This document shows positions 1,062-31,731 of a stretch of 64,000 nt of DNA, one piece after another. Below the pieces are notes generated by a model that saw only the letters and a program-made list of their open reading frames with translations, ran no database searches and was not told where the DNA came from. The stretch lies in the IMG/VR virus record IMGVR_UViG_3300005965_000002, positions 124,001-188,000 of that record. One strand, given 5' to 3'. How positions within the stretch are numbered: position 1 is the stretch's first letter; each line of letters starts with the position of its first letter. The position numbers were made by a program, and so were the translations under genes.

Positions 1062-3032
1062 TTGGATATTGATAAATTTTTTGGCGATATATATATTGTT
1101 AATATGAATAAACTAGATGAAATCAGAGAGAAAATTAAGAATGGCTCTTCCTATGAGGAACTATCCAAGGAGTATCCTTTAACGATAAATGGATACAAGA
1201 AACTGGGAGGAGTAATAAAAAAGAAGAGAAAAGTAAATAGCCATTCGGTAGCTGCTGTATACGGGAAAAAGTTAAAGGACGGATTAAATACTATAGATAT
1301 AATAGTTCAAGATGAACAAAAAGGTAGAGAAAAGAAATTAAACAGATCTCATATTATAGGAACATTACTAGGAGACGCATCTATAATAGTCACCACAAAT
1401 AAATGCTACCGTAGAACTTTTTACTACACAGTGGCACATACATGGAGACAGATAGAATACACTAAACTTAACTATGAAAAATTAAAGCCATACGTATCCA
1501 GGGTTAATATATCGGAGCCTAGAGATTGTGACGGTTTTAAAGATCACTGTATTTATATAAATACGGAAAGTACATCTGATTTTTTAGAATATTACGATAT
1601 GTTTTATACCCATGGAAAAAGAGATTGTAATCCTAAGAAACATGTTTTTCGCAGCAATATAGCTACAGAAATAGATGTAGAAGTACTATCGTTTTGGTTA
1701 ATGGATGACGGTAATCAGAGGGGAAAAGCAAAAGGTGTATTTGAGTTGACCATAGGAATGCAGGATTTTTATACAGAGAGAGAAGTAAAATGCTTTGTTG
1801 ATATTCTAACAGATAAAATAGGTATACCTTTCTATTACAACTTTGGTTCTACTTCTATCGAGATATATAATAAAATAGAATCATCAGAAAAGGCTATTCA
1901 GTTATTATCTCCGTATATTATCCCTGACTTAAGTTACAAATTGGGTTTAGAACCTGACATGTGCGGTTCTGTTTATAGAGGTGAGATTTGGTATAAAAAC
2001 TGGCAAAAAAGTAGGATAAATATACAGCACCCCTTTTTAGAAGATAATGACATAGAAGACTACAGAAGATCTAAAGATCCAAAGTTTAAGGAAATGTTTA
2101 GAAGAGCTCTTTTATACCGTACGAAAGTAAGAGGGTTTCCACACGCATCTTATTCTAATTCAGAATTACTTGATCTATGGAATAATTTAAAAGAGAGTTC
2201 TTACGAGTGTGTTGAGGCGTATTTAAAACCTAATTACAATTTAAATAGATTTCCCAGTTATTTTTTCCCTAATAGATTCCGGTGTATTAAGAAAGGTCAT
2301 AAATCTGCTGTAGAGGTATTTAACAATAATAAGGATTTATCAAAGGTAATAGATAGACAGCTAAAATCAAAGGACAATATAAACAACAGTAATATAAGGA
2401 ACGCTATAGGTGGATACGGTGCTCCAGTACCCGCTCAGTTTAACCCGGCTTATGCTAGGTACTTCATTGCTAAATATAGTAATGAAGGGGACTTGATATT
2501 AGACCCTTCTGCAGGATGGGGTAGTAGACTAGCTTCATCTATTTCTTTAAATAGAAGTTATTACGGTATAGAGCCCAATAGTGAAACCGTAACAAACTTA
2601 AATAAAGAGATTTCTTGGTTTAAGAATAACAACATAGATGTTAATGCTACTATAGTAAAGGGTTGTTCAGAGGATATAGAATCTTATAGGGGTATTAAAT
2701 TCGATATGGCAATTACTAGTCCTCCGTTTTTTGACAAGGAGGTTTATAGTTATGAGGATACACAATCGATAAGAAGATACTCAGATTTTGAAGAGTGGTG
2801 TGAGAAATTCTTAAAGGTAATGATTTTAAATACATTTAATTCTTTGAAAAAAGGAAAATTTTTTGTACTAAATGTAGCTAATTATTCTGACTGTCATTTA
2901 GCATATATTTCTAAGTACTTGTTAAAAGATGTGGGGTATTCTATAAAGGATATAGTCTATACAAAACCTGTTTCTAGACCAGTTTCCGGTAAATCGTTAA
3001 AAGAGGAATTTATAGTAGCGGAGAAAATATGA
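1062..3032 (+). CDS. LAGLIDADG endonuclease - amino-DNA methyltransferase fusion
   Basis: IIGTLLGDAS and LSFWLMDDGN (LAGLIDADG_2-type motifs); C-terminal LDPSAGWGSRL (SAM motif I) and ITSPPFF (motif IV); TTG start, alternative ATG slightly downstream. Confidence 0.85.
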   Translation: MDIDKFFGDIYIVNMNKLDEIREKIKNGSSYEELSKEYPLTINGYKKLGGVIKKKRKVNSHSVAAVYGKKLKDGLNTIDIIVQDEQKGREKKLNRSHIIGTLLGDASIIVTTNKCYRRTFYYTVAHTWRQIEYTKLNYEKLKPYVSRVNISEPRDCDGFKDHCIYINTESTSDFLEYYDMFYTHGKRDCNPKKHVFRSNIATEIDVEVLSFWLMDDGNQRGKAKGVFELTIGMQDFYTEREVKCFVDILTDKIGIPFYYNFGSTSIEIYNKIESSEKAIQLLSPYIIPDLSYKLGLEPDMCGSVYRGEIWYKNWQKSRINIQHPFLEDNDIEDYRRSKDPKFKEMFRRALLYRTKVRGFPHASYSNSELLDLWNNLKESSYECVEAYLKPNYNLNRFPSYFFPNRFRCIKKGHKSAVEVFNNNKDLSKVIDRQLKSKDNINNSNIRNAIGGYGAPVPAQFNPAYARYFIAKYSNEGDLILDPSAGWGSRLASSISLNRSYYGIEPNSETVTNLNKEISWFKNNNIDVNATIVKGCSEDIESYRGIKFDMAITSPPFFDKEVYSYEDTQSIRRYSDFEEWCEKFLKVMILNTFNSLKKGKFFVLNVANYSDCHLAYISKYLLKDVGYSIKDIVYTKPVSRPVSGKSLKEEFIVAEKI

Positions 3033-3868
3033 AAATAGTATGTAAAATATGCGGGCACTCAGGATTAGACATATCATCGCATATAAGGCTAAAGCACAAT
3101 ATCTCTATTGTAGAGTATCGTGAAAAGTATAAATGCAGAGTAGTTAGTCCAGAGATAGATAAGAAAAGAAAAGAAACTACAAAGAAATTGTATGGGGATC
3201 CTAATTGGCGTAATAAAGACGCTCAAAAATTAATGTTCTCTGATTATAAAGGCGGGCATCCGTTTAAAGATCCTGAATGTAGAAAAAAAGCGTGTAAGAC
3301 AAAAGAAAAATTATATGGGGATCCTAATTACACTAATAGAGAAAAAGCAAAGAAAACTAATTTGGAGAGGTATGGGACTGAATATACATGTGCTTCAGAG
3401 CAAGTGATAGAAAAAAGGATAAAGACTCTAAAAAGCAGGTATGGGAAAGTATTTAATGTTGAGGAACCACATAACAAGACAAAACCTCCAGAAGATTTTA
3501 AGGAAGTATTTATTAAGGAGGGTTTGACATATGATGCCCTGTCTTATAAGTACGAAGTCTCTGTCCCTACTATAAAAAGGTGGGTAGACGAGCTATCTTT
3601 AAAAAGAGAACCTGTAAAATCTTCTGAAAAGAGCTACGAATCACCTGAAGAATTAGTATCAAAGTACTTGGATACATGTTACGAACTATCGAAACCTTTA
3701 TCATTTTATGATTACGGCAAAATAAAAGGTGGGAAGTATTGTAATAGACTTAAGAGGTTATTTAATAAAGGAAAAAAGTTTGAGCATATCAAACCCTTAT
3801 TGAATAGAGCAGTTACAGATCAGTCATTAAAGCATAAGGTTCTGTATGAAATGGAATCTCCGCTATAG
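3029..3868 (+). CDS. C2H2-type zinc finger / basic repeat / HTH protein (homing-endonuclease-associated architecture)
   Basis: CKICG...SHIRLKH; repeats KKLYGDPNW, KLYGDPNY, KKTNLERYG; HTH-like YEVSVPTIKRWV; ATGA overlap with upstream gene. Confidence 0.7.
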   Translation: MKIVCKICGHSGLDISSHIRLKHNISIVEYREKYKCRVVSPEIDKKRKETTKKLYGDPNWRNKDAQKLMFSDYKGGHPFKDPECRKKACKTKEKLYGDPNYTNREKAKKTNLERYGTEYTCASEQVIEKRIKTLKSRYGKVFNVEEPHNKTKPPEDFKEVFIKEGLTYDALSYKYEVSVPTIKRWVDELSLKREPVKSSEKSYESPEELVSKYLDTCYELSKPLSFYDYGKIKGGKYCNRLKRLFNKGKKFEHIKPLLNRAVTDQSLKHKVLYEMESPL

Positions 3869-3960
3869 ATATCTTTATGTTTTTTTAATTATAAATACTT
3901 TTTTGTATATTAGAATGAGCGTTAGATAATTCTTGGTTTCTAATAAAGGCCGGTAATAAT

Positions 3961-6000
3961 ATGCATAAGATATCAGATGATACTATAAAAGAGCTAATAA
4001 TCGATAGGAAAATGACAGATCACCAGGCAGCTAAGTATTTAGGTGTAAGCCGCATGACCGTATCTAGGAGAAGAAATAAAATAGGTATAGATCAGAAGCC
4101 TAAGCGTCCTGATGGTTACTATGAATTAACAGCGGAGCAGGAAAAAGAGTTAGAAAGGCACTACAACGAAGGTAGGAACGATTACGAAGTTTCAGAGTTA
4201 ACGTGTTTAGGCAGGAACAGATTACGTGAGTGGAGAAAAAAAAGAGGAATACTCTCTAAGTCTAATAAAAAAGGCTTAGGCAAAGAGGATGCTGAGAAAG
4301 CGATACTAATGAGAAATAGTGGTAGCACATATGAACAGATAGCTGCTGAGTTTGGTGTTAAAAGAACATCAATATCAAAACTACTTAAAAGAAGCGGGTA
4401 TAAAGAAGATAATATGTATAGGCCCACCAGCCCTAAATGGGCTGAATCCTATACTCTTACCAATGACCAGAGGTCTGTCATAATTGGAGATCTTTTAGGA
4501 GATGGTACTTTAGTATCTACTTCAGAAGAAAACGCATACTATCAGTCAGGCCACTCGAATTATCAAGAATTTTTTATAAGATGGAAATATAGTGTGTTAT
4601 CTCCGCTGACTTCGAGTGTGGGTAGTAAAAAAGATTATAGCGCTTACTCTGTAAAGACTTGGACATGCCGAGAACTAGGAGCATTAAAAAAAGTTTTTTA
4701 TCCCGAAGGTAATAAAGTTATTAATAAAGAGATCGCAGACACCATTAATGAGATCACGCTAGCAGTTTGGTATATGGGAGATGGGTCGTTAATTAGGAAA
4801 TCCCCTTATATACATATAGGCAAACAAGTGGATGCAAGTGTTTTTAAGGAATCCATTTTAAGGAATTTAAGCATATCTTCCTATGTGAGGGACTACAGTA
4901 AAGAGAGTCACTTAGTATTTGAGTCCGATTCTTTCTTTAAAAAAACGGCTCCATACATATTACCAGAATTTTATAAAAAGGTTCCTGAAAATTACCACAC
5001 TAACTTAGGGAAGTACTGGTCTGATAAGAGTTTGTTTCCTTATGTAACTTCTGATATTTATTTAAGATTACCGGATAAAGATAAGATACAAGTAGTTAAT
5101 GCTTTGTGCGCTTATTATAGAAAAAAAGGTTTTCCTTACCCGAGATGCAATAGAAGGGAGTTGCTCAAGTCTTATAAGTCTTTTTTAGATAAGGATAATG
5201 AGGTAGCAGCATTTAAGATATGTAACCATTTTATGCCTCATAGATATGATTGTCGTAGGTATGATAGCAACCCGATGGAAAATTGGAATAATGATAAACT
5301 TTTTAGAAAGTTTATTATTAACAGACTAACTTATGGAAAAGGTTATATATCAGATTCTGTCATTAGGACAGGTATGCAACTAAAAGGTGTAGTAGCTAAT
5401 TTCAGCCCTATGACTGCCCGTTACATCTATAATAACTATTTACCGGAAGGAGGATCTTCTCTAGATTTTAGTTCTGGTTTTGGTGGCAGGCTGCTTGGGT
5501 TTCTGGCTTCAAAACCCTCCGGTACGTATTTAGGTGTGGAGCCTTTTACAAAGTCTTATATTGGCTTAGAAAAAATGAAGGAATATTTTTTAGACCACAA
5601 CAAATCTAAGTCCGTAGATATAGTAAAATCTCCTTTTGAAGACTTATGTGGTAAACTTAGTGGTGGCTCGTTTGACATGGTATTTTCTTCTCCTCCTTAT
5701 TATGGCTTAGAGATTTATAGTGAAGACTCTACACAGAGTTTTATCCGTTACCCTAAATATGAAGATTGGCTAAATAACTTTTGGTATTTGGTTTTAGATG
5801 AAAGTATAAGGGTGCTGAAGAGGTCAGGTCATCTTATTTTTTCGATAGGAAACTATAAAAATTATGATCTAATACACGACACTAAATATTATTTAAGGCA
5901 GAAGAGCGTAGAAGAGAAAGGTTCCATTAATATTCATTATAAAAACGTATACCTTAATTCTAAGAAGAAAGAAGATGTATTCGTGTATAAAAAACTTTAA
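3961..6000 (+). CDS. HTH - LAGLIDADG endonuclease - amino-DNA methyltransferase fusion (second paralog)
   Basis: N-terminal HTH repeats (AAKYLGVSRMTVSRRR; IAAEFGVKRTSISKLL); IIGDLLGDGT and LAVWYMGDGS; LDFSSGFGGRLLG and VFSSPPYY. Confidence 0.85.
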   Translation: MHKISDDTIKELIIDRKMTDHQAAKYLGVSRMTVSRRRNKIGIDQKPKRPDGYYELTAEQEKELERHYNEGRNDYEVSELTCLGRNRLREWRKKRGILSKSNKKGLGKEDAEKAILMRNSGSTYEQIAAEFGVKRTSISKLLKRSGYKEDNMYRPTSPKWAESYTLTNDQRSVIIGDLLGDGTLVSTSEENAYYQSGHSNYQEFFIRWKYSVLSPLTSSVGSKKDYSAYSVKTWTCRELGALKKVFYPEGNKVINKEIADTINEITLAVWYMGDGSLIRKSPYIHIGKQVDASVFKESILRNLSISSYVRDYSKESHLVFESDSFFKKTAPYILPEFYKKVPENYHTNLGKYWSDKSLFPYVTSDIYLRLPDKDKIQVVNALCAYYRKKGFPYPRCNRRELLKSYKSFLDKDNEVAAFKICNHFMPHRYDCRRYDSNPMENWNNDKLFRKFIINRLTYGKGYISDSVIRTGMQLKGVVANFSPMTARYIYNNYLPEGGSSLDFSSGFGGRLLGFLASKPSGTYLGVEPFTKSYIGLEKMKEYFLDHNKSKSVDIVKSPFEDLCGKLSGGSFDMVFSSPPYYGLEIYSEDSTQSFIRYPKYEDWLNNFWYLVLDESIRVLKRSGHLIFSIGNYKNYDLIHDTKYYLRQKSVEEKGSINIHYKNVYLNSKKKEDVFVYKKL

Positions 6001-6080
6001 AAAGTGCGTACAAAACAGTATATTAGATTAACTTGATATTATTATCTCATATCAAAAACAAACAACATGAGGAGGCCCTA

Positions 6081-6278
6081 ATGGCTATTGCGGTAAAGAA
6101 GCCGCTGTCGAAGACAGCTCGAATCAAGCTTGTGCGTGCTGCTAAAAAGCAGGCAGGTAGAATGAAGCGTCCGGACATGATTAAGATGGTTCGGGACATG
6201 GACACCCGTGTTACCACAGCTGAAGCCGGTAAGATTGTAACCGAAGCTAACCAGGCAACAAAGGCTAAGAAGAAGTAA
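6081..6278 (+). CDS. Small basic K/R/A-rich protein, possible DNA-binding core protein
   Basis: ATG at 6081 after gaggagg RBS; 65 aa, ends KAKKK; followed by terminator. Confidence 0.6.
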   Translation: MAIAVKKPLSKTARIKLVRAAKKQAGRMKRPDMIKMVRDMDTRVTTAEAGKIVTEANQATKAKKK

Positions 6279-6306
6279 GTATATACTTACATACATTTGA
6301 GATATT

Positions 6307-6337
6307 AAAGGCGAGGGCTTAGGCTCTCGCCTTTTTT
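6307..6337 (+). terminator. Rho-independent terminator
   Basis: aaaggcgagggc-ttag-gctctcgccttt followed by T tract. Confidence 0.85.
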
Positions 6338-6344
6338 ATTTCAC

Positions 6345-6358
6345 ATAATCTTTTAATA
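6345..6358 (+). promoter_or_regulatory. Putative late promoter motif copy 1
   Basis: ATAATCTTTTAATA, 44 nt before the next start. Confidence 0.6.
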
Positions 6359-6402
6359 CAAAAGCTCTTATGTAGGACTAAAGATATTTTAGAGAGATTT
6401 GT

Positions 6403-7080
6403 ATGAAAAAGACCATAACTTCTAATATTCTAGTATTTGCCTTTACGATATTAGAGAAGAATGCTCCTATAGAGATTGAAAACAAGTACGGGATAAAGGT
6501 AGATGAATCCGTAGAAGGTAAGTTTGCTGTTTTAATTCTCAAGGCTCTCGATAGGCTTCCTTTAGAGTTAACTAAAGCTTGTGGTATAGTTTCATTAGGA
6601 ATAAAGGATTTAGGTCCTTCTAAGGAATATTATCCCAACCATGGAGTCTACGTATCTAATACTCTTTACCTAAATAAATGGAATACCGAAGATCCCTGGG
6701 TAGTTGAGGATTCATCGGGTAATAGGTTAGATAGGTTCGACCACACCTTATACCATGAGATGGGTCATGGCTTAGACGAAGTACTGGGAGGTGAAAAAGA
6801 CCTTTCACTTCAGCCAGAATGGTTAGATTTGTCTGGGTGGAGCCCAGAGCCTAAAGATGGTTTAAAAAGAGTGATTATTCGTGAAGCAGGATCCCCTGAG
6901 TTAGTAGGGGAGTGGTGGTACAATCCGGAGGCTGGGTACACTAGATTTTATGCTAAAAGAAATCCTTGGGATGATTGGGCAGATAGTTTTGCTTATTATG
7001 TAGCAGGACTTAAAAGTTATCTTCCTGAATCCAAAATCAGTTATTTCAATAAGTTAATAGGCAAATTTTTCAAGGAATAG
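6403..7080 (+). CDS. Zincin-type (HExxH) metallopeptidase-like protein
   Basis: TLYHEMGHGLDE plus downstream YAKRNPWDDWADSFAYY, matching the Y-x3-N-x2-E-x-F-A-E pattern of lethal-factor/Zmp1-like zincins but with Asp substitutions. Confidence 0.7.
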   Translation: MKKTITSNILVFAFTILEKNAPIEIENKYGIKVDESVEGKFAVLILKALDRLPLELTKACGIVSLGIKDLGPSKEYYPNHGVYVSNTLYLNKWNTEDPWVVEDSSGNRLDRFDHTLYHEMGHGLDEVLGGEKDLSLQPEWLDLSGWSPEPKDGLKRVIIREAGSPELVGEWWYNPEAGYTRFYAKRNPWDDWADSFAYYVAGLKSYLPESKISYFNKLIGKFFKE

Positions 7081-7082
7081 AT

Positions 7083-7880
7083 ATGAAGGAAGTAAGAAAT
7101 TATTTAGATAAATTAGCCGTGAAGCTAGCCAGCCATGGGTTTGAGGATTTTGCTTTTGATGTGTGGGATGCGGGTACCTCGATAATGAGGTACGCTTCTT
7201 CTAACCAGGTAGAGGAAGCTGAAAAAAGATATTACGAAACAAAAAAAGTAGATGATTTAGTAGAGTATCATAACTCGGGGCAAATGGATAGAGACATCGC
7301 AACTATGATAAAGGGCGGGAAGTCTTATAAAGAGATAGCAGAGAGAAAATTCAAGCAGATCCAACAGGATAACCCGCCGTATGCGCACGATCAAGGAGCT
7401 AAACAGTTAGCAGAAAGTTTAATGCGCGGTGTTCAGAGGGGTGCCATAAGAGCAGCTTCTTTGATTATGTCTAGAATGGCATGTTATCTAAAGGACCTGG
7501 GTTATGATAATGAGGCTCAGATACTGCATAGCTCCTTTTCTAAGGTAGCATCTAAGGGCCGTAACGTAGGTGATAAAGTAGAAAATTTTCAAGTAATTTC
7601 TCTTGAAGAAATGTATGAAAATTCTACTCACAAAGCTGAGCAGAAACCAATATTAGAAAATATCCAAATAATGGTTAAAACATATGAATCTGTACTAAAG
7701 CTTATTAAGAAATTTAAGAAAGATTACGAGAAGCTTATAAAGGTTTACTTGAAACAAACAGGTGAAGAAGTAGACAAAAAAGAATTAGAAGAATATTCAA
7801 CTAAAATGGTAGAGTTAATCACATACTATGACACTGCAATCAGTAATGAATTCAGGTCTCTCGCAAAGGCTATGGTATAG
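7083..7880 (+). CDS. Hypothetical head-associated protein
   Basis: 265-aa ORF with two copies of an amphipathic helix motif and RYAS/RAAS/KVAS sites. Confidence 0.6.
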   Translation: MKEVRNYLDKLAVKLASHGFEDFAFDVWDAGTSIMRYASSNQVEEAEKRYYETKKVDDLVEYHNSGQMDRDIATMIKGGKSYKEIAERKFKQIQQDNPPYAHDQGAKQLAESLMRGVQRGAIRAASLIMSRMACYLKDLGYDNEAQILHSSFSKVASKGRNVGDKVENFQVISLEEMYENSTHKAEQKPILENIQIMVKTYESVLKLIKKFKKDYEKLIKVYLKQTGEEVDKKELEEYSTKMVELITYYDTAISNEFRSLAKAMV

Positions 7881-7911
7881 CCTGATCAAGAGCATTTTAA
7901 GGAGCCCCGTT

Positions 7912-8175
7912 ATGAAAGCTCAATTTTTGAGTGAGGCTAGCGGTAAAACTAGTTTTATGAGAGTGATTACCACTTTTATCGTGATTACTATTATGGGAGT
8001 GTTTTTGGCTCAGAATATTATGTCTATGATAAACGGTGGTGGGTTAGTTTCTTTGGGGGTGTCTGAAGCTTCATTGTTAGCCGGTCTCTTAGGTATGAAA
8101 GCTGCCCAAAGGTTTGGTGAACATAAATCAAGTTCTGTGCAGTCATTGCCCGATAATGAGATGCCTAAGTCGTGA
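7912..8175 (+). CDS. Small two-TM membrane protein (holin-like)
   Basis: ATG at 7912 after aaggag; GKTSFMRV followed by two hydrophobic helices and a charged tail. Confidence 0.55.
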   Translation: MKAQFLSEASGKTSFMRVITTFIVITIMGVFLAQNIMSMINGGGLVSLGVSEASLLAGLLGMKAAQRFGEHKSSSVQSLPDNEMPKS

Positions 8176-8444
8176 AAAAATCAGATATTCTACCATCTTT
8201 GGAGTACTATATGCCAAACCCAAAGGATTATGATAATAAGCAAGATTGGATGGATGCCTGTATGTCCCAACAAAAGGACGAAGGCAAAAATATGAAGAAA
8301 GAAGATGAGAGGGATCAGGCAGTAGCCATTTGTCTAAATATGTGGAGAGATAAGAATAAGAAGACTGCCAGTAAGGGCAAGGTAGCGAGCGCCGCCAAAG
8401 CTTTATATAAATTATCAAAGAAATTAGAAGATCTTGGAAAGTAA
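8172..8444 (+). CDS. Small phage head-associated protein
   Basis: PNPKDY...WMDACM...DQAVAICLNMW pattern typical of small phage head-region proteins; KTAS/KVAS sites. Confidence 0.55.
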   Translation: MKKSDILPSLEYYMPNPKDYDNKQDWMDACMSQQKDEGKNMKKEDERDQAVAICLNMWRDKNKKTASKGKVASAAKALYKLSKKLEDLGK

Positions 8445-8445
8445 A

Positions 8446-9669
8446 ATGAAATATCTCATATCCGATTCCCTGAGACGTATTGCATCCGCTTTAGAAGTTG
8501 ATCTAGATAATGTTAAGAATAGCAAAAAGCCGGTTGTTTTCTTAGGTGGAAATGCTTCTGATAATTCCTGGAGAGAAGATATAAAAAAGGAATTTTCCGA
8601 TAAGATTATGTTTTTGGATCCCTTTGATAAAGATTGGGAAGCAGAAGAAAACATATATAAGGAATTAGAAGCATTGATGAAATCGGACAACGTCGTTTTC
8701 TATAAGGGCGGAGAAGGATCTGAAAAAGAAAAAGAATTTCTTGATCAGGTCAAAAAAAGTAATTACGAAGATTTTGACGACTTGAGCGAGCTAAAGAATT
8801 ATCTAAAAAAGATAAGCGGTAAAATGGAAAAAACTGCTTATCCTATAGTAGGTCAACCCGCTTCTGACCTTAAGTTGGAGAAGCTCGATAAAGAATCCAT
8901 CGAGGCTTTAATAGAGGATTTAAAACAGGGTGTGGATATTAAGGTAGACCCAGAAGTAAAAAAGATTCCCAATATGTCCGATTTGCATGAGTTGAAAGCT
9001 GAAGACATAAAAAAAGAGATAGCTAAAGGTAATCCTTTTTTAAAAGTGTTGCTTGATAAGTATAAGAGTTTACCCGGGAGTAAAAACCCAGCGCTCAAAT
9101 ATGATAAAGAAAAACATATGTATATACCAACTGAATTGGGGCAAATGAGTAAATCAGCAAAGCAAGGAATGGTATATGACCGGAGTTCTACTCAATATGA
9201 TTTTCCTGAATTAATAGCTGATAAAGTTCTGCGCTGGTCTAAAAAGAATGTCCCGGATATTGCACTAGGAGAAGATGGCAGAGAAGATGAGATTCATGTT
9301 ACTATTCTTTATGGGTTGTTTACTACAAATCCTTCCGAAGTAGAAGATATTATAAAAAAGTATAACATAGAACCTTTTGAGATAAGACTATCCTTAATTA
9401 CTGCTTTTTTAAATGGTGACCAGGATGTTTTGAAGATAGATGTAGAATCCTCTGGACTCCACAACCTCCATAAGCTACTCCAAGAAAATATCAAGAATGA
9501 TAACAAATATCCGGAGTACCGACCCCACGTAACTATAGCCTACCTTAAAAAAGGCGAATCAGAAAATTACATAGGTAGAGATGATTTTCAGGGAATATCG
9601 TGCAAGGTGAATAATATTGTTTTTAGCTCCAGAACGGGCGATAAAATAGACATTCCTCTTATTGGTTGA
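8446..9669 (+). CDS. Nucleoside 2-deoxyribosyltransferase-like domain + Acb1/T4 gp57B-like 2H phosphodiesterase
   Basis: N-terminal VVFLGG...SWRE...FLDPF...DW...E; C-terminal two HxT motifs EIHVTILYG and YPEYRPHVTIAY; ATG at 8446 preferred over TTG at 8434. Confidence 0.75.
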   Translation: MKYLISDSLRRIASALEVDLDNVKNSKKPVVFLGGNASDNSWREDIKKEFSDKIMFLDPFDKDWEAEENIYKELEALMKSDNVVFYKGGEGSEKEKEFLDQVKKSNYEDFDDLSELKNYLKKISGKMEKTAYPIVGQPASDLKLEKLDKESIEALIEDLKQGVDIKVDPEVKKIPNMSDLHELKAEDIKKEIAKGNPFLKVLLDKYKSLPGSKNPALKYDKEKHMYIPTELGQMSKSAKQGMVYDRSSTQYDFPELIADKVLRWSKKNVPDIALGEDGREDEIHVTILYGLFTTNPSEVEDIIKKYNIEPFEIRLSLITAFLNGDQDVLKIDVESSGLHNLHKLLQENIKNDNKYPEYRPHVTIAYLKKGESENYIGRDDFQGISCKVNNIVFSSRTGDKIDIPLIG

Positions 9670-9671
9670 TA

Positions 9672-9685
9672 ATATTCTATTAATA
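9672..9685 (+). promoter_or_regulatory. Putative late promoter motif copy 2
   Basis: ATATTCTATTAATA upstream of 9747. Confidence 0.6.
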
Positions 9686-9746
9686 ATACACATAAGTAGA
9701 TTCTATAAGATCTCAGACTATATTCATATCCAGAAAGGAGTATGAG

Positions 9747-10853
9747 ATGGCAGAACGTAACTATGTCGCTCTCGTTGATTTCAATGTCAACATCGACAAC
9801 GGTAAGGAGACAGTAAAAATAACGGCTGGCTCTGAGTTTTCATACGACGGGTTGTATGTTACTTTTGGTGATTCCAGAGGAATGTGCAAACCTCTAGGTA
9901 AGATGGCTGGAGAATGGTTTTCAGTATCCAATAATCAGCCAGCACAGACTAAGCCTGCAGCGCCTAACCCCAATACCACTAAATCTAGAGTAGAGAATAG
10001 TGATGAAGTACCGAACGCTCCTGTAGTGAATGCGGGGAAAGATCGAGAACTAGAAGGCATGGTGGATAACTATGAAAAGGGTACTTACAAAAATCCTTCA
10101 GCAAAAGTTATCCACGATGATGAGGCTGTAGTCGGCCAGGTAAAGAATACCGACCAGAACGCAGTAAAAAATACGACAGGTGTTCAGATGAATGAGCAAC
10201 CGGATAGCGAAAAAAGGGTTGTTTATGAGGAAGAAAGGGTTGCTAAGGAAACCGTCCCCCAGAAGCCTGATGAGGGTGAAAAGCACCTGAAGGTAGAAGG
10301 CGAAGGAGATGGCGTTTTAGTTAAGGAAACCAGTCCTCTGTCTGAAGTAGAAAAGCTTAGGAAGCAGTTAGCAGAAGCTGAGGCTCGTCTTGCCGAATCA
10401 CAGAAACCCCAGGTTTCTGTCGAAGAGGATGCAGTTAAAAAGACTTCTGCTCTGAATAACCAATCTACTGATATTGGTTCTTCCACTCAGGCTCAAACTA
10501 TAGAAAAGCCAGCAACTCCAAAGGGGAAACTTTCCGGAAAAAAGACTGGAACTTTGAAGAGAGCGACAAACTCAGGTAGACCTGTAGTGATAGAAGAGCA
10601 AGAGGGTACTGTAGTTGGTAAGGTAAAAAATACCAACGTTAATCAGACAAAGGATGGTATTACCATCCGTACCCGTGTGAAGAATATGGATGATGTGGAG
10701 GAGGCGGCGGTTACCTATGGTAACTCTGTACCGGATGAACCCTCTGTAGAAATAACCGGGTCTGAACCATCAGCAGTTGACGCCTCTGATGTCGGTGTGC
10801 CTGTTCAAAAGGATGCTGATATCGACGTAGAGGATTTACTTAGCGAAATATAA
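9747..10853 (+). CDS. Hypothetical acidic, largely low-complexity protein
   Basis: 368-aa ORF with good RBS (aaggag); recurring acidic-V-V/K motifs (DDEAVVGQV, EEQEGTVVGKV). Confidence 0.65.
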   Translation: MAERNYVALVDFNVNIDNGKETVKITAGSEFSYDGLYVTFGDSRGMCKPLGKMAGEWFSVSNNQPAQTKPAAPNPNTTKSRVENSDEVPNAPVVNAGKDRELEGMVDNYEKGTYKNPSAKVIHDDEAVVGQVKNTDQNAVKNTTGVQMNEQPDSEKRVVYEEERVAKETVPQKPDEGEKHLKVEGEGDGVLVKETSPLSEVEKLRKQLAEAEARLAESQKPQVSVEEDAVKKTSALNNQSTDIGSSTQAQTIEKPATPKGKLSGKKTGTLKRATNSGRPVVIEEQEGTVVGKVKNTNVNQTKDGITIRTRVKNMDDVEEAAVTYGNSVPDEPSVEITGSEPSAVDASDVGVPVQKDADIDVEDLLSEI

Positions 10854-10864
10854 GGTAGGTTCAA

Positions 10865-12625
10865 GTGGCGGCAAGGGTTTGGAAAGTAGTGGCTGATTAT
10901 TTAGACGGCCCAAACTATAGCGTTTTCTTTCAAGAACCTGCCTGGATGGACTATATGAAGCAGAAGGCTGAGAAGCCTAAAGGAAAAGCTCCTGAGTCCA
11001 TTAAGAAGATGATCAAAGAAAAAGGTCTTTCCGAACCCTTCCCCGCCTATAATCCTTATGATTATCAGTCTCCTACTGATAAGCCAAAGGATTTAAAAGA
11101 CGGGCCTCCTTTTCAAAACGAATTTCCCAATTATCCTATTAATCCTCCCCACGCTGAATTTAACAGAGGTAAAGTATTCAGCCCAGGTGGAGTAATGGAT
11201 TATAAGTATAAGACACGTAACCAAGATTGGACACAGGATCCGAGCGAGCAGTATCCTGCCATCAGTATAGACCGTAAGTATGCTTCTGATGAGCAGGTAA
11301 AGAGGGTGGTAGCTGGGTACTTACTCCAGCATATGCCTCTGGTGCTCAATCCAGAAGATTTCGATGATTTTGGAGCGTATATAAAGACAGCCGCAAGCTT
11401 AAATGAGATCATATCAAAGGATTTTCACTATAAAAATGATGAAAAGATTAATAGAGCAGAACAGTGCTCTGTAAAACGCTTGAATCGACCAAGTGAGATA
11501 GAGCAAGGAATGATACGCTACCATGTAAATTGTACTGGGTCCCCGGATACACATACAGTTGTTTTTCAGTTTATGAGGGATAAAACAGGGAGACGTCCTG
11601 ACACATATGCAGATTACCCTGTACAGATAGCGTGTAGCTGTGAATCTTTTCTTTTTTATGGGGCTCAGTATTATGCCGTGCAGGGTGAGTACATGTATAT
11701 GCCGAGATTTAGAAGATCCTTGGTTCCTCCCACTCCACACGAACAGATTTCTAGCACGGAAGGCAACAGACTGAATCCTGGTAGAGGTTTGAATTTTAGG
11801 GTGTGTAAACATATTCTTGCTTGCTATAACCAAATAAAAGGAATGAGGATTACAAAATACTATAGAAATTACCCGGAAATTGGGGCTCCTTCGAAGATAA
11901 TGAATAAGGAGCAGTGGAAAAAATTACTTAAGTTTGAATTTACTAAAGAAAACATTGTAAAAAGATTGACCTCATCAAAGCCAAAAATACCAGCATACTA
12001 TTCTAGTAAAAACATTAAACCTGAGTTAAATAAGTGGTTTAGAGAAGTATATGTTCCTAGAACAGAAGATGAAAAGATAAAGATTCTTGAAACGTTAGTG
12101 GAGCATCCTGAAGAAATTTTCTTTCTTGCAATAAAGGATGCGTACTTCCGACAGGGTAATCTTTCGAAGAGATATGTTGATAAGGTATATGATCTACTGT
12201 CAAAAGTTATAATGCCAGAAAGTGACCAAGAGCCCAGACAAGAGAAAATGGAAGGGGTGCCTGAGGAACAACAAGAGGTAGGCAAAGGCACTGGTATGGT
12301 CATTCCAGATGTAGAGAATATCCTGTCCGAGCGTGTAGAAGGTGAATTCGATGAAAGCATGATAAAAGATATTGAGACAGAGATAGAAAATATTAACCCG
12401 GAACTAAAGGGTGATAAGAAGGAACAAGCTATAGAAACCATAAAGTCTCAATTGATTGATGGCTTAGCCAAAGAAATAGAAGATGAGCTTAAGAAGCCTT
12501 ATGCTACCACGCCACAGGAAAAAATAGATAACAAATTAAAAAAGATAACACCTACATCTATAAGGAGAAAAATATGGAAGTCTATACAGCAGAATGGTCT
12601 GCAGCAGATATTAGGGGAGCTATAA
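10865..12625 (+). CDS. SWIM-type zinc-finger domain protein
   Basis: IACSCESF...VCKHILAC (CxC...CxH); KYAS and KTAA sites before the domain. Confidence 0.7.
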   Translation: MAARVWKVVADYLDGPNYSVFFQEPAWMDYMKQKAEKPKGKAPESIKKMIKEKGLSEPFPAYNPYDYQSPTDKPKDLKDGPPFQNEFPNYPINPPHAEFNRGKVFSPGGVMDYKYKTRNQDWTQDPSEQYPAISIDRKYASDEQVKRVVAGYLLQHMPLVLNPEDFDDFGAYIKTAASLNEIISKDFHYKNDEKINRAEQCSVKRLNRPSEIEQGMIRYHVNCTGSPDTHTVVFQFMRDKTGRRPDTYADYPVQIACSCESFLFYGAQYYAVQGEYMYMPRFRRSLVPPTPHEQISSTEGNRLNPGRGLNFRVCKHILACYNQIKGMRITKYYRNYPEIGAPSKIMNKEQWKKLLKFEFTKENIVKRLTSSKPKIPAYYSSKNIKPELNKWFREVYVPRTEDEKIKILETLVEHPEEIFFLAIKDAYFRQGNLSKRYVDKVYDLLSKVIMPESDQEPRQEKMEGVPEEQQEVGKGTGMVIPDVENILSERVEGEFDESMIKDIETEIENINPELKGDKKEQAIETIKSQLIDGLAKEIEDELKKPYATTPQEKIDNKLKKITPTSIRRKIWKSIQQNGLQQILGEL

Positions 12626-12861
12626 ATTTAGGATTCCATTATTTAGAAAACATGGACTGTATTGTGGGTCATGTGTTTACGCCTCCCATATTAATGAAAA
12701 ATATCATTATAGAGTGCTCCGAGGATGTAGTGTTTGACTTCATACCCGAAGGCATCGGCTTAATTAGAACAGCCTATTTAAAGTATAAGTTTGGGAAGAA
12801 TAATAAAATTGTTTTTGTCGATCAGCATAAGACAAAAGAGGTGGTCATTACTTTAAAATAA
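12574..12861 (+). CDS. Hypothetical protein
   Basis: 95-aa ORF filling the gap; start uncertain because of a 52-nt overlap. Confidence 0.45.
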   Translation: MEVYTAEWSAADIRGAINLGFHYLENMDCIVGHVFTPPILMKNIIIECSEDVVFDFIPEGIGLIRTAYLKYKFGKNNKIVFVDQHKTKEVVITLK

Positions 12862-12905
12862 AGATCAATATAGATATATTATACCAGACAATATAAGGAG
12901 ATAAC

Positions 12906-13367: not shown

Positions 13368-13630
13368 CCCCAAATTATATAACCATGGTAGGATGGTTAG
13401 GATCTTTTTTCTTAATAGCTTGCGGAGTCCCTCAGCTTTTTAAAACCGTTAAAACAAAAAAAGTAGATGATATATCTATTCTTTTTTTGTTATCTTGGTT
13501 TTTTGGAGAAGTTTTTTCTCTTTTATTTGTGCTGATCCGAGCACCTGAAGTTCCCCTAATAGCAAACTATTCATGGAATCTTTTGATAACCGGGACGCTT
13601 TTGGTTTTTTATATCGTATATAGGAGATAA
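13364..13630 (+). CDS. PQ-loop / SemiSWEET-family three-TM protein
   Basis: GWLGS...GVPQLFKTVKTKKVDDIS motif with three hydrophobic helices; ATG at 13364 overlaps upstream TGA. Confidence 0.8.
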   Translation: MTPNYITMVGWLGSFFLIACGVPQLFKTVKTKKVDDISILFLLSWFFGEVFSLLFVLIRAPEVPLIANYSWNLLITGTLLVFYIVYRR

Positions 13631-19908: not shown

Positions 19909-19927
19909 TCTATTAAGGTGCTAACTA

Positions 19928-19941
19928 ATAATCTTTTAATA
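19928..19941 (+). promoter_or_regulatory. Putative late promoter motif copy 4
   Basis: ATAATCTTTTAATA upstream of 20027. Confidence 0.6.
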
Positions 19942-20026
19942 CGGCAAGATTTATGAGAGGAGTCTTTTTATAGGGCTCTATTTACATAAAACACTGTAGA
20001 AATAACTCCTAAAGGAGGAAGTAAAA

Positions 20027-22002: not shown

Positions 22003-26643
<4,641 letters not shown>

Positions 26644-27772: not shown

Positions 27773-29305
27773 ATGTCAGTAGCTTTTTATCCGGGTCAAA
27801 CGCTAGAAAGCACAGACCTTAATATTATCATAAGAAACGACACAGGAACCCCTGTAGATCCGTTTTATATTCGTTACTCGCTTTTTGATAATACTACTGG
27901 TATTCCCGTCCTTATAGGAGCTCCAAATAGAGTGCCCGCGACCACCGGGGTTGGTAAGTACTATGCAAATGCTACTTTACCACTAGATTCCAATATAGGC
28001 GATTGGATGATCCATTGGGATTTTAGAGAAACCTCAGGCAGTCCGATGGTACAGGTAGTCCAAGAATTTAATGTAGTGGACCAGGAAGTACGAATAACTG
28101 TATCCGATAATAATAACATGAATGATATGATCCGTAGAGTCAGAGTGCTCTTGCGAGACAATAATCCCGACAGAAATTATCGCTTCAGACCACCAGCTTC
28201 AGAAAAGTTCCTACAATCTCAAGCACAGGTTTTTGGTTATATCTGGGAAGATGAAGAAATACTTGAATACATTTTAATGGCTATTGATGACTTTAATGCT
28301 GCCCCTCCTGTAACCGGGGTAACTATAGATAGTATCCCGCTGAGATGGCGTACAGCCGTTATTCTTAGGGCTTGTTCGTTTGCCTGTTTTGCTATTGCAA
28401 TGAACTGGATAGCTGATGAGTTTTCCGTAAAAGGGGACGAAAAGGTTAAGGTTAAGGACGAGGAAGGTAACGTTTATGAATTATCATTAGAAGAACTATT
28501 TGATGTAATATATGGTGATAAAATTTTGGAGATGGAGAAAGAAGTACGGGACGAATATAAGAAAGTTATGAAGGAACTAGATAGTGATCAATTAGTTATG
28601 AATAGAGAAAAAAACACATTTGTAAAAACCATAAAAAAAGTTTTCAGGAAGATAAAGGATATCCTTGTAAAGAAAAAAGCATACAATGTTGATAAGATAA
28701 AAGAATCTTTTTATAAAGGTAGGCTAGAAGTAAAAAGCTTATCGGAAGATAAGGGGAATGTTGATTGGGTACCTATAAAGGATATATATAGGCACAATTC
28801 CCTATATAAAAAGATGATAAAGGTAGTTACGGATAAAGGAGATGTAGTAGTAACCGACGACCACAGTTTGTTTTCTTGGGAGACAAAAAAGCCTATAGCA
28901 GCTAATAAGTTGAAGATAGGGTATCCAATAATAGCTAATGAAAATAATATTTTAGTAAAAGCTGTCATAAGAAGTATAGAAGATAATCCCGCCGAAAATT
29001 ATACATATGATTTATGCGTACCTGGAACCGAGAGCGCTTTTTTGTCCTCTGGTATTTTGGTTCATAATTCTTATACCATATCAGGCGTATCTCTGGATGT
29101 TGATAAAAGTGCAAAATATGAAGGTATGAAGAACAACTTTATCACTGAGTATGATAAGTTAAAAGAACAAGCCAAGAGATCTATTAAGATCATCCGTGGC
29201 CTTCGTCAACCGAGATACGGTGTGGGCATTTCCTCAGCACTCGGACCCTATAGTAGCCCGGGTGTCCAAGCCCGCCGCAACTTTATATCTGGCTTTAGAA
29301 ATTAA
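27773..29305 (+). CDS. Neck / head-tail connector protein interrupted by an intein
   Basis: IRRVRVLLRD...WEDEEI...AIDDFN connector-like core; exteins join as WIADEF|SYTISGVSLD. Confidence 0.7.
   Translation: MSVAFYPGQTLESTDLNIIIRNDTGTPVDPFYIRYSLFDNTTGIPVLIGAPNRVPATTGVGKYYANATLPLDSNIGDWMIHWDFRETSGSPMVQVVQEFNVVDQEVRITVSDNNNMNDMIRRVRVLLRDNNPDRNYRFRPPASEKFLQSQAQVFGYIWEDEEILEYILMAIDDFNAAPPVTGVTIDSIPLRWRTAVILRACSFACFAIAMNWIADEFSVKGDEKVKVKDEEGNVYELSLEELFDVIYGDKILEMEKEVRDEYKKVMKELDSDQLVMNREKNTFVKTIKKVFRKIKDILVKKKAYNVDKIKESFYKGRLEVKSLSEDKGNVDWVPIKDIYRHNSLYKKMIKVVTDKGDVVVTDDHSLFSWETKKPIAANKLKIGYPIIANENNILVKAVIRSIEDNPAENYTYDLCVPGTESAFLSSGILVHNSYTISGVSLDVDKSAKYEGMKNNFITEYDKLKEQAKRSIKIIRGLRQPRYGVGISSALGPYSSPGVQARRNFISGFRN
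28424..29068 (+). mobile_element. Mini-intein (215 aa, Ser1, no endonuclease)
   Basis: Starts SVKGDEKVKV; block B VVVTDDHSLF; block F YTYDLCVPGTE; ends ILVHN followed by Ser. Confidence 0.85.
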
Positions 29306-31731
29306 TTTTCTTTATTGATTATATTTATTTGTCTTTTTATCCATCTTTTATTTTCATTTAAATGCTCAGCCATTTCTTGATATGTCATAGTGCCCCTATT
29401 ATTCTTTATAAAGTATATTTTATATTTATTTTTTCGGCTTTTAGTACTACCTATAGGATTCTTCGGAGACAGAATTCCATCTTTTATCATAGATCTTACT
29501 CTGCCACTGACCCATCTTTTAGTTTCGTTTAAGTTTATAGCTATTTTTTCCTGGGTCAAGCTTTGGTAGTTATCTAAGATATATTGATCTTTTTCTTTTG
29601 TGATTCTAGAGTTGTTACTTATCCTTTTGCTTGTTCTTTTGTTTTTAGATATTTTTATCAAGTTACTATAAAAGTCGCTAAAATCATCAACGGGTACACT
29701 ATTTCTTTTAGGGTAAACTTTATCTTTATATGTTTTAAGCTTTTCCAAAATTTGTTTTTCTCTTTTGTTACAGCTTGTGAGAAGTGCGTATTTATGTTTT
29801 TTTGAGATAGGTATCTTTACTGATTTATTAATAATGGATTTTATATCTTTGTACCACTGATGTAATATTTCCTTAGGTATCTTTTTTATATTTTTATATC
29901 CGTTGTCTTTAAACCATTCACTTTTAGTTTCTATTCCTTTACTTTTGCACCAAGCTTTAAAAGCTGAAGTTCTTTTTAAGCTTTGTTCAGAGAAGGGTAA
30001 ACCATTTTTAATTTCTTTATTTTGGTATACATAACCGGTTCCGAAATCATCCCCAAGATACGAAAAGTTACAACTTTGATATATAGTACCTATTTCATTT
30101 GCCTTTGGATCTGCGTAGCAGACAAATAGCCTCTTAGGTGTGTTTTTAGTCATCCACTTACAGGAAAACATTATTAACCTACTCCCTAGGTTTTTCGGTG
30201 TCCATGAAGCAGTAGCTCCCCGTTGTATAAGGGCTTCAAAGTGTTTCGTATTCTCTCCTAATAACTTAGAATAAGAGTTTGGCTCATTAATTAGAACTAC
30301 GCCGCCCAAAAATCCTTTATATCGTGCGGTAAAAACCCATTTAGGATTGTTTCCTATTGTACCTAACCATTCATACTTTTCTATAAAGTGTTTAATTTCT
30401 TTTGTATATTTTTCTTGCTTTAGCACAAAGTCTTTTGCCTTTATCTTTGAATAGTCAAAGCTTATATTTTCTAAATCATTTTTTAATGTAGATACTTTTA
30501 TTTTGTATTGATGGCAAACAGATTTAGACGCTTTTTTGTTTAACTCATCGGTGATAAATTCTATAATATCTCCTTTTTTTTCATGGTCTACGACCAACCT
30601 GGAGTCAAATCTTACTAAATTATCTATAACGGAGTTTTGCCTTTCATCTCTAATAGATGTTTTTAAGATATTTTCCTTTCTAGGCCCTTTCTTAAAATCT
30701 TTAATCTTACCATGCCAGAAATATCCATCATATTGTACCCACACGTTAATAGATGGTAGATAGAAATCAATATTAGATTTTGAAATAGGGTGGTATACCT
30801 GGAACTCGGTATAGGGGTCTATCTTTTTAAGATACATAAGAAATTTTATTTCTTCATCGGAAGAGCTAAAGGTATTTTTTTCTTTTGATGTGTTTAATAC
30901 TTTTTTATAGATTTCCTCATTCTGCAGGGGGCTAGGTACTCCATATTTTTTAATGTTGGTTTCTTTTATTTTTTCTTTTGTAGGTTCATCCTGAAATATG
31001 TTGTCTACTCCATACTTTTTGTTTAATGTAGATTTTACCTTATTCCTTACTGCAGGGTCTTGGGAAGGATACTCTACTCCTCTTCTTTTAAGATTAGTTT
31101 CTCGGCTTTTTCTTTTCATAGATTCTAATTGAGTGGTGTACTGCACTCCGTATTTAGCTTGTACGGCTTTGGAGGTACCTAGGACATTGTCTTTTTTTAT
31201 AATATCCGGGTTTCTACTTAGACCCAATTGGTTAGCTTTATACCTAATAGATTTCCATGATCTACTAAATTTATTGATTAAAAATTCTTTAGTATTGTTG
31301 ACATATATTTCTTTCAAAAGATTTATTTCTTCCTCTTTCCAGAAATCTTCTCTTTCTGGTACTTTTTTACCACCTTCAATAGATTCTTTTTTTACTATTT
31401 CCGGATCTCTCCTTAAACCCATTGCATAAGCTTTCCCCCAAATTCCAGACCAGGGTCTATTTAATTTGTCTTGGATTTCTTTTTTAGTACCAATTGGGTA
31501 TATTGACTTAAGAGTCGATAACTCTTCCTCGGACCAGGAATCTTTTCTTTTCCCCCTAGTGGCTCGGTCTTTTCCAATCACAGTGGCGTCTCTTTTTAAT
31601 CCTAGCTTTTTTGAGCGTCGATAGATAGTAGCCCATTCTTTATCGAGTAGTTTAGTCAATTCCGATTTTCTTTTATTTTCAAAATTTTCTCTTAGGATCT
31701 TATCTTCTTCAGGAGTCCATCGTTTAGCCAT
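29302..31731 (-). CDS. Myb-like repeats + basic repeats + DUF559/Vsr-like nuclease + Mom-like GNAT domain + HTH fusion
   Basis: 3x W(T/S/K)xEE..L..LGL.R repeats; KKYGV repeats; IDFYLP...VQYDGYFWHG; FIEKYEWLG...KNLGSRLI...YADPKANEIGTIYQSCNFSYLG; two terminal HTHs; only credible minus-strand gene. Confidence 0.8.
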   Translation of the reverse strand: MAKRWTPEEDKILRENFENKRKSELTKLLDKEWATIYRRSKKLGLKRDATVIGKDRATRGKRKDSWSEEELSTLKSIYPIGTKKEIQDKLNRPWSGIWGKAYAMGLRRDPEIVKKESIEGGKKVPEREDFWKEEEINLLKEIYVNNTKEFLINKFSRSWKSIRYKANQLGLSRNPDIIKKDNVLGTSKAVQAKYGVQYTTQLESMKRKSRETNLKRRGVEYPSQDPAVRNKVKSTLNKKYGVDNIFQDEPTKEKIKETNIKKYGVPSPLQNEEIYKKVLNTSKEKNTFSSSDEEIKFLMYLKKIDPYTEFQVYHPISKSNIDFYLPSINVWVQYDGYFWHGKIKDFKKGPRKENILKTSIRDERQNSVIDNLVRFDSRLVVDHEKKGDIIEFITDELNKKASKSVCHQYKIKVSTLKNDLENISFDYSKIKAKDFVLKQEKYTKEIKHFIEKYEWLGTIGNNPKWVFTARYKGFLGGVVLINEPNSYSKLLGENTKHFEALIQRGATASWTPKNLGSRLIMFSCKWMTKNTPKRLFVCYADPKANEIGTIYQSCNFSYLGDDFGTGYVYQNKEIKNGLPFSEQSLKRTSAFKAWCKSKGIETKSEWFKDNGYKNIKKIPKEILHQWYKDIKSIINKSVKIPISKKHKYALLTSCNKREKQILEKLKTYKDKVYPKRNSVPVDDFSDFYSNLIKISKNKRTSKRISNNSRITKEKDQYILDNYQSLTQEKIAINLNETKRWVSGRVRSMIKDGILSPKNPIGSTKSRKNKYKIYFIKNNRGTMTYQEMAEHLNENKRWIKRQINIINKEN

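Follow-up and report, generated by a model that had tools for sequence, protein, structure and literature searches.

Nuclease-modifier fusion genes as candidate homing cassettes beside conserved genes of a very large phage

A 64,000-nucleotide stretch of viral DNA (hereafter the window), corresponding to bases 124001-188000 of the 258,580-base linear IMG/VR record IMGVR_UViG_3300005965_000002, carries three genes, here called A, C and D, in each of which a nuclease or nuclease-like domain is joined to a DNA-modifying domain within a single polypeptide. Comparison of these genes and their loci with those of related viruses shows that such fusions form a large family of cassettes as yet without a name, and that at least one of these cassettes has moved recently between phages. 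The interpretation favoured here, tentatively and with somewhat less than even confidence, is that each of the three is a free-standing homing endonuclease gene joined in frame to a protective DNA modifier. Homing endonucleases are generally discussed apart from restriction-modification systems, as a different kind of selfish nuclease element; the genes described here unite the two types in one protein, across a large family.

Domain organisation of genes A, B and C

Genes A and C, with gene B between them, follow the major capsid protein gene and are organised as listed here.

1062..3032, plus strand: gene A, 656 amino acids (aa), LAGLIDADG-methyltransferase (Pfam, AlphaFold2 (AF2) model, alignment of 26 sequences)
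A residues 1-93, plus strand: short helical N-terminus, no Pfam match
A residues 94-300, nucleotides (nt) 1341-1961, plus strand: double-motif LAGLIDADG domain (LAGLIDADG_2 at 96-269)
A residues 301-455, plus strand: helical linker
A residues 456-656, plus strand: amino-methyltransferase (motif I D481..G485, motif IV S553-P-P-F)
3029..3868, plus strand: gene B, 279 aa, with a C2H2-type zinc finger, DUF7487 repeats and a helix-turn-helix (HTH) (Pfam DUF7487 7.5e-9, ROS_MUCR 4e-4)
3961..6000, plus strand: gene C, 679 aa, HTH-LAGLIDADG-methyltransferase (Pfam, BLASTP against A, domain hidden Markov models)
C residues 1-165, plus strand: HTH copies (Pfam HTH_23)
C residues ~166-344, plus strand: double-motif LAGLIDADG domain (LAGLIDADG_2 3.3e-22)
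C residues ~372-664, plus strand: amino-methyltransferase (motif IV SPPY)

Both domains of A are recognised by Pfam (LAGLIDADG_2, 1.2e-13; N6_N4_Mtase, 4.2e-16). The LAGLIDADG_2 model (PF03161) scores 51.8 bits in A and 79.6 bits in C, set against a cut-off of 25, and the N6_N4_Mtase model (PF01555) scores 60 bits in A and 21 bits (3e-4), under its cut-off, in C. The AF2 model of A, built on the 26-sequence alignment, is compact (predicted local distance difference test, pLDDT, 90.1; predicted template-modelling score, pTM, 0.82) and suggests that A is one integrated enzyme. Residues 53-297 of the model resemble the homing endonucleases I-SceI (Foldseek 1.7e-9) and I-WcaI (Z 17.9, 207 of 226 residues), and residues ~383-656 form a Rossmann-fold methyltransferase whose closest solved folds are Trm11 and TrmN (Z 19). 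The methyltransferase motifs of A and C come in the order I, then IV, the latter reading S553-P-P-F in A and SPPY in C. A motif IV of the SPPY kind is typical of N4-cytosine methyltransferases, homologs from Vibrio phages carry an N4-cytosine methylase annotation, and the modifier of A and C probably makes N4-methylcytosine on DNA.

The initial annotation of this region had counted three independent nuclease-modifier fusions, each with extra DNA-binding repeats. The three genes and their domains are real by the Pfam and fold evidence, but they are not independent: A and C align at 27% identity over 534 columns spanning both domains (BLASTP, E 1e-37) and are paralogs, so that the window holds two architectures, not three. 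In a tree of the LAGLIDADG domain, A and C fall into separate, well-supported clades. The additional DNA-binding repeats are clear in C and D and weak in A, where the short helical N-terminus is the candidate. Scans for Rfam families in the window and for intein splicing domains in A, C and D returned no match, and a tRNA scan of the window was likewise empty; given the empty Rfam and tRNA scans and the intergenic position of the genes, A, C and D are not intron-borne. Across the whole 258-kb record, A and C are the sole matches to N6_N4_Mtase, and D and B the sole matches to DUF7487, with no unfused copies. Gene B, in which Pfam scans detected no nuclease domain, begins at a start codon that overlaps the stop codon of A and is translationally coupled to it, and B accompanies A-type genes at four other loci (L083, L096, L039 and L047), the last three belonging to distant relatives. 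It could be a partner of A, a regulator or a nuclease-less remnant.

Family size, active sites and selection

A profile search of 1.84 billion cluster representatives (50% identity clusters) returned 3469 proteins at E < 1e-30, and both domains are present in 129 of the 154 best clusters. Nearly all of these two-domain clusters (123 of 129) keep both LAGLIDADG acids together with the PP of motif IV. In an alignment of 155 sequences the catalytic columns hold D in 132 of 133 and 138 of 139 filled positions, and motif IV reads SPPY in 139 of 151. Among 26 relatives of A, which are 22-58% identical to it, G104, D105, K193, D216, G217, D481, G485, S553 and P555 are invariant. The possibility that the nuclease domains are inactive, raised with the initial annotation, is not borne out: the catalytic residues are conserved, and the domains are predicted to cut DNA. 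Ratios of nonsynonymous to synonymous divergence (dN/dS) against the related locus L083 are 0.16 for A, 0.11 for B and 0.11 for C; by domain, the LAGLIDADG parts of A and C give 0.06-0.09 and the methyltransferase parts 0.14-0.16, values (0.06-0.16) by which the domains of both genes are judged to be under purifying selection. As far as sequence comparison can tell, then, the nuclease-modifier fusion is shown to be a widespread and selected architecture.

Artefacts of gene calling were considered as a source of the fusions and are ruled out, as the single open reading frames (ORFs) recur in 129 clusters and fold compactly. Among family members whose source names were checked, the only names found were "hypothetical protein" and "DUF7487 domain-containing protein", and a search of full-text literature found no description of LAGLIDADG-methyltransferase fusions, nuclease-Mom fusions or DUF7487. 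Some members also match the Eco57I methylase model. Variant arrangements occur as well: one gene (L034:3594-6881) has two methyltransferase domains after the LAGLIDADG domain, and two proteins (P0147 and P0275) have methyltransferases in tandem and no nuclease.

The slot after the capsid gene

The major capsid protein has 552 relatives in IMG/VR, of which 80, at 73-92% identity, were kept, and the contents of the slot that follows the capsid gene could be read at 53 loci. On the left, the cassette is bordered by two features.

94..975, plus strand: major capsid protein gene (phrog_2522, 1.1e-53), the conserved left flank of the A-B-C cassette
994..1031, plus strand: hairpin followed by a T-run, 3' of the capsid stop codon (read directly; an equivalent hairpin is present in L003)

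The hairpin is absent from the list of the pattern scanner, and the cassette starts just downstream of it, at about 1040. In L003, whose capsid protein is 92% identical, the capsid terminator hairpin runs directly into the upstream region of the next gene, which makes window positions ~1040-5994 an insertion relative to that locus. The slot is also empty in L013 and L015. One or two LAGLIDADG-methyltransferase genes occupy it at 17 of the 53 loci, with the same order as in the window (A, B, second methyltransferase) at L039 and L047. A LAGLIDADG-Mom gene is found at two loci, a LAGLIDADG gene without a methyltransferase at about ten, and a methyltransferase with a different N-terminus at three; the remaining loci carry neither. 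At L008 and L019 the LAGLIDADG protein of the slot bears a ParB_N domain, and at L008 a PAPS_reduct/DUF3440 gene lies two genes downstream of the LAGLIDADG-ParB gene, forming an IbrA/IbrB-like pair and adding a third modification chemistry to the slot. In the LAGLIDADG tree, the clade of C (support 97/93) also contains a Mom-fused, a methyltransferase-fused and an unfused member, and another clade groups methyltransferase-fused with unfused genes, so that the modifier has been repeatedly exchanged or lost on related nuclease scaffolds. Assembled contigs of four other samples (2017-2022) have the same A-B-C order. Taken over all loci, the presence or absence of genes at a fixed site and the swapping of their modules show the A-B-C cassette to behave as an accessory, exchangeable unit.

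A recent transfer centred on gene A

The same A-B-C order is found on a 16-kb contig from another sequencing run (L083), and synonymous divergence (dS) between it and the window was computed gene by gene.

Upstream genes more than 3 kb from the cassette: dS 1.4 to unmeasurable (saturated)
Gene at -1774..-572: dS 0.75
Gene at -508..40: dS 0.30
Capsid gene: dS 0.20
Gene A: dS 0.11 (3' half 0.06)
Gene B: dS 0.42
Gene C: dS 0.35
Next gene downstream of the cassette: dS 0.61
Gene 6403-7080: dS 1.98
Gene 7083-7880: dS unmeasurable (saturated)

Nucleotide identity follows the same course, rising from 68-80% to 97-99% at 1692-3191. This V-shaped profile centred on A is the pattern left by conversion tracts that spread from a nearby break, and the comparison shows that the A-B-C cassette has undergone recent recombination between diverged genomes. 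As dS counts synonymous changes only, constraint on the capsid protein does not explain the dip; constraint on codon usage could contribute a little. At L096, where the capsid protein is 92% identical, the A-type protein is only 41% identical and its neighbours 44-52%, which indicates that between transfers the cassette diverges like ordinary resident genes. Unusually fast evolution of the cassette proteins, which had been entertained, is ruled out by these same values, the capsid protein being merely very conserved.

The empty sites, the swapping of modules, the dS dip and the two-domain architecture of 129 of the 154 best clusters bear out the proposal of the initial annotation that these genes belong to a recurrent class of mobile cassettes pairing a nuclease with a base modifier, and A, C and D are not the conserved, syntenic core genes of all relatives that they might have been. 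They also bear on the purpose of the cassettes, for which degradation of host DNA had been one suggestion. A single-chain restriction-modification weapon, in which the nuclease degrades unmodified host DNA and the modifier guards that of the phage, would leave the empty sites, the exchange of modules at a fixed slot and the conversion tract unexplained. Enzymes of the I-SceI type, which the fold of A matches, have long recognition sites that occur rarely and make poor bulk nucleases, and the multiple sequence-specific DNA-binding repeats argue for one or a few targets. The pairing of nuclease and modifier does match the logic of restriction-modification, and a position after the capsid gene would fit late expression; such a weapon is nevertheless judged very improbable, and degradation of host DNA by long-target enzymes of the LAGLIDADG type unlikely.

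Gene D, a Mom-like fusion beside a conserved gene

Gene D pairs a different nuclease-like domain with a different modifier and lies beside a conserved gene of its own, here called E.

29302..31731, minus strand: gene D, 809 aa (Pfam, AF2 pLDDT 85.6, fold searches)
D residues 1-180, nt 31192-31731, minus strand: three Myb/SANT-like repeats
D residues 186-290, minus strand: DUF7487 helical repeats (Pfam DUF7487 2.7e-16)
D residues 290-400, nt 30532-30864, minus strand: small alpha/beta nuclease-like domain (AF2 model, conserved residues)
D residues 428-675, nt 29707-30450, minus strand: Mom-like GNAT domain (Pfam Mom 6.2e-10)
D residues 700-809, minus strand: two C-terminal HTH
27773..29305, plus strand: gene E, conserved neighbour of D, carrying a mini-intein
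E residues ~224-439, nt 28442-29089, plus strand: mini-intein of ~215 aa, no endonuclease domain (boundaries ADEF/S...VHN/S from intein-less homologs)

In the favoured reading, the nuclease of D is tentatively taken to consist of the DUF7487 repeats plus the small PD-(D/E)xK-like domain, and the modifier to be Mom-like. The latter assignment is well marked in the sequence: the Mom model (PF25680) scores 39.5 bits against a cut-off of 27.1, and residues 429-675 have Mom of phage Mu (8bv8) as the top match in both fold searches (Foldseek 2e-7; Z 16.4), searches with the complete model of D being dominated by the GNAT domain. The activity of Mu Mom needs Y49, R101, S114, D139 and Y149 (PMC7261163). 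In the alignment, D139 and Y149 have as counterparts in gene D the residues D541 and Y551, which do not vary among 36 family members; Y453, R504 and S517 match Y49, R101 and S114 by spacing only. At least 79 homologs of D share the DUF7487 and Mom architecture. The Mom domain of P0083, a LAGLIDADG-Mom protein, is 52% identical to that of D, as close as those of D's own orthologs.

The nuclease-like domain is less readily placed. Its secondary structure in the AF2 model runs helix, three strands, helix, strand, and S291, E294, D322, Q333, D335, G336, W339 and H340 are invariant or nearly so in the D family, in the pattern S-x-x-E...D...Q-x-D-G-x-x-W-H. D had initially been called DUF559/Vsr-like, a label that the sequence models do not sustain: PF04480 (DUF559) has no match in D, PF03852 (Vsr) has none there and a sole match of 12.7 bits elsewhere, hmmscan of residues 283-410 returned nothing relevant, and neither a PDB profile search nor hhalign against an ORF from the L023 intron gave a link to a known nuclease. 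The neighbours of the segment in the ESM Atlas are viral DUF559/REase clusters (feature score 0.91, template-modelling score 0.73), with which the conserved acidic residues agree, and the label may be kept as a lead at the level of the predicted fold.

D is the only minus-strand gene of its neighbourhood and ends tail-to-tail with E, the stop codons overlapping, about 240 nt from the mini-intein. Gene E was used as the probe for this slot, as the gene at 32401-33747 gave no relatives. The arrangement recurs in L084, L085/L086, L087/L088, L091 and L092 at 40-51% identity; in L090 and L093, which lack D, the next gene starts about 30 nt after gene E; and in L089 a plus-strand LAGLIDADG-methyltransferase of 768 aa stands in place of D. 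By these comparisons D is patchy and its modules are exchangeable. The intein of E matches Pfam Intein_splicing at 1.7e-6, under the cut-off, and is missing from L088-L091. D is present in four of four intein-bearing and two of four intein-less genomes, a sample far too small for any association to be read from it. By analogy, D and the endonuclease-less mini-intein of E may take part in collaborative homing.

That D stays syntenic in most relatives is one of several points that would suit a domesticated targeting module, in which the nuclease parts only bind or nick DNA at specific sequences and direct or regulate the modifier, the genes would be DNA-modification enzymes of an ordinary, late-expressed kind, and patchiness would reflect the turnover of accessory genes. 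LAGLIDADG scaffolds have been recruited as DNA binders elsewhere, in WhiA and in maturases, the proteins carry many extra DNA-binding repeats, and gene B has repeats of the same kind but no nuclease. In known domesticated scaffolds, however, the active site has not been preserved as it is here, where the LAGLIDADG domain almost universally keeps its two acids and its active-site lysine; the acidic residues of the nuclease-like domain of D are likewise invariant, and the sharp dS minimum centred on A is a prediction of break-induced conversion. Domestication is thus considered improbable, if less so than a weapon against the host.

Self-protection or cargo

The favoured reading, that of homing endonucleases fused to protective modifiers, would operate in three steps. 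During mixed infection the nuclease would make its cut at a long site, within a conserved gene or close to it, in the DNA of a cassette-free relative; repair by recombination would then copy the cassette, along with flanking DNA, into that relative; and the fused modifier would mark the DNA of the carrier, sparing it from its own nuclease in the manner of restriction-modification. The mark would possibly shield the carrier from host restriction enzymes too. The capsid gene region is a likely candidate location of the homing target of the A-B-C cassette, and the group I intron found in the capsid gene of relatives also speaks for a hot spot of homing there. Competition between phages and self-immunity, both proposed in the initial annotation, would be the purposes served.

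That the modifier protects carrier DNA from the nuclease to which it is fused is possible, a little short of an even chance, and is favoured because three unrelated chemistries have been fused in frame, because the model of A is compact, and because the slots lie beside very conserved genes. The last of these is itself an argument for protection, in that genes adjoining the slots are too conserved to gain immunity by mutation of the target. In the fullest form of this idea, the fused modifier would be the immunity half of a homing drive, marking its own target and so letting the nuclease attack a site that cannot be mutated, for example in the capsid gene; swaps of the modifier would then constitute an arms race, since a rival with the same mark would be immune. 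This fuller version is doubtful.

The main alternative is that the nuclease provides homing and the modifier serves only against restriction, its mark having no effect on the fused nuclease. The fusion would then keep a useful gene on a selfish one and slow the decay of the endonuclease. This alternative, like the fullest version of the drive, is regarded as somewhat unlikely, although all the evidence of mobility fits it equally well. Mom (PMC7261163) and the orphan methyltransferases of phages have established anti-restriction functions, and the fusions are the only genes of N6_N4_Mtase type in the 258-kb record. The short motif of a methyltransferase and the long target of a LAGLIDADG enzyme need not coincide, and LAGLIDADG genes that lack a modifier are maintained at the same slot. 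A modifier that was only cargo could, however, be encoded by a separate gene, yet three unrelated chemistries are fused in frame and the fusion is found in 129 of the 154 best clusters; the compact model of A (pTM 0.82) also speaks against it, and the purifying selection on the nuclease in lineages where the cassette seems long resident is left unexplained.

Several observations weigh against the favoured reading. The roughly ten LAGLIDADG-only genes at the capsid slot indicate that the nuclease lineage persists without a fused modifier, and relatives consisting of the methyltransferase alone exist as well. Trm11 and TrmN, the nearest folds of the modifier of A, are tRNA m2G enzymes, and a DNA substrate is assigned on the basis of Pfam and context. 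The divergence of the A-type protein of L096 fits long vertical residence between transfers. No empty-site joint was found in the contigs of the four other samples, assemblies being blind to rare variants and to base modification. D shows no sign of recent transfer: in five of the eight distinct relatives it keeps its synteny and has diverged to the background level (40-54%), and no near relative of its locus that would reveal such a transfer was found.

If the mark does protect from the fused nuclease, these genes would reveal a new way for homing elements to achieve self-immunity, as well as a new weapon between phages, and they would supply a natural collection of long-site nucleases, each paired with its cognate modifier. 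Should the modifier be no more than cargo, homing cassettes would still spread anti-restriction DNA modification among jumbo phages.

Comparison with known systems

One parallel is with the free-standing seg and mob genes of the T-even phages, which are associated with marker exclusion. Those genes, too, are intergenic beside conserved genes, show presence and absence among relatives and undergo co-conversion, which corresponds here to the dS gradient around A. They encode GIY-YIG or HNH enzymes with no fused partner and protect themselves by differences in target sequence, whereas A, C and D carry a LAGLIDADG or small PD-(D/E)xK-like domain, each fused to a DNA modifier. I-SceI and I-WcaI share the fold and the two catalytic acids of A and C, but are intron-encoded, organellar proteins of ~230 aa; in the phage, A and C stand free and have an additional methyltransferase of 350 aa and HTH repeats. 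Type IIC/IIG restriction enzymes such as Eco57I and MmeI resemble A and C in combining nuclease and amino-methyltransferase in one polypeptide with a logic of cutting and protecting. They differ in having a PD-(D/E)xK nuclease and a shared short recognition domain and in being cellular defence genes, whereas A and C have a homing-type LAGLIDADG domain with its own long-site binding surface and sit at a phage locus of homing type. With their homing-type nuclease and phage homing slot, A, C and D are, on present sequence evidence, not assigned to single-chain Type II restriction-modification.

Mom of phage Mu, a methylcarbamoylase (8bv8), has the fold found in D, where the Pfam Mom match is above cut-off and the counterparts of D139 and Y149 are kept. 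It is a stand-alone protein of ~230 aa, unlike D, which adds a nuclease-like domain and about ten DNA-binding repeats and is only 16-18% identical to it. ParB-methyltransferase fusions and IbrA/IbrB-like pairs of ParB and PAPS-reductase also join a DNA-binding, nuclease-related module to DNA modification, but the ParB module is no homing endonuclease and these systems are not known as mobile by homing. The nearest published analogue found is gp210 of phage PhiPA3, an intron-encoded HNH endonuclease active in jumbo-phage competition, which, like the element proposed here, is a homing endonuclease of a jumbo phage that hits a conserved gene of a co-infecting relative (PMC11620839). It differs in being an HNH protein inside a group I intron, in that the intron itself disrupts the target, and in having no modifier domain.

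Genomic setting and other mobile elements

The sequencing runs that hold the record come from hypersaline lakes and microbial mats. CheckV puts its completeness at 55%, and contigs of 466 and 470 kb among the relatives found through the capsid gene imply that the record is part of a very large phage genome. Megablast of window positions 1-20000 against GenBank phages found no close relative. The initial annotation had placed all three fusions in a structural region, which is only partly apt: the major capsid gene is followed by A, B and C, and D comes after a collagen-like tail fibre, but between them lie a 1384-aa multi-glycosyltransferase, a polymerase-exonuclease-like gene and an RNA-ligase-like gene. 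The first of these (13633-17787) is built of several glycosyltransferase domains; the tail-fibre gene (22003-26643, 1546 aa) has a GC content of 50-54%, compared with ~38% elsewhere in the window.

Promoter and terminator scans of the window gave counts not above chance. The motif GTATATTAR occurs at 3905-3913, 6018-6026 and 31771-31779 (minus strand), three of only four matches in the window, and these copies stand 45-60 nt 5' of the start codons of C, the post-cassette gene and D; with a total count not above chance, they hint at a shared promoter at most.

Other mobile elements lie at or near the slots. In L022 a group I intron at 2954-3261 (RF00028, 61 bits, 6e-14) interrupts the capsid gene after codon 31, and L023, L038 and L027 have a gap of ~1 kb at the same codon, at about 8970-10000. 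The gap in L023 holds an ORF of 303 aa with a zinc-ribbon-like N-terminus and an 'FDFY...IEADG' motif; by eye it is PD-(D/E)xK-like, an identification to which neither Pfam nor hhalign lent support. The capsid gene of the window itself is uninterrupted. From these arrangements it is evident that homing-type elements frequently target the capsid gene and gene E in this clade. Genes of TnpB/IS605 type adjoin cassettes in L006 and L007:11104-12219 and in L087:1161-2261, and L095:8116-8887 has a resolvase with a TnpB fragment, so that a second kind of mobile element uses the same slots. A third LAGLIDADG element of the window is found at 43218-45329, where a 703-aa homolog of the actin-like protein Volactin (PF25216, 2.6e-57) is split by a LAGLIDADG_3 intein.

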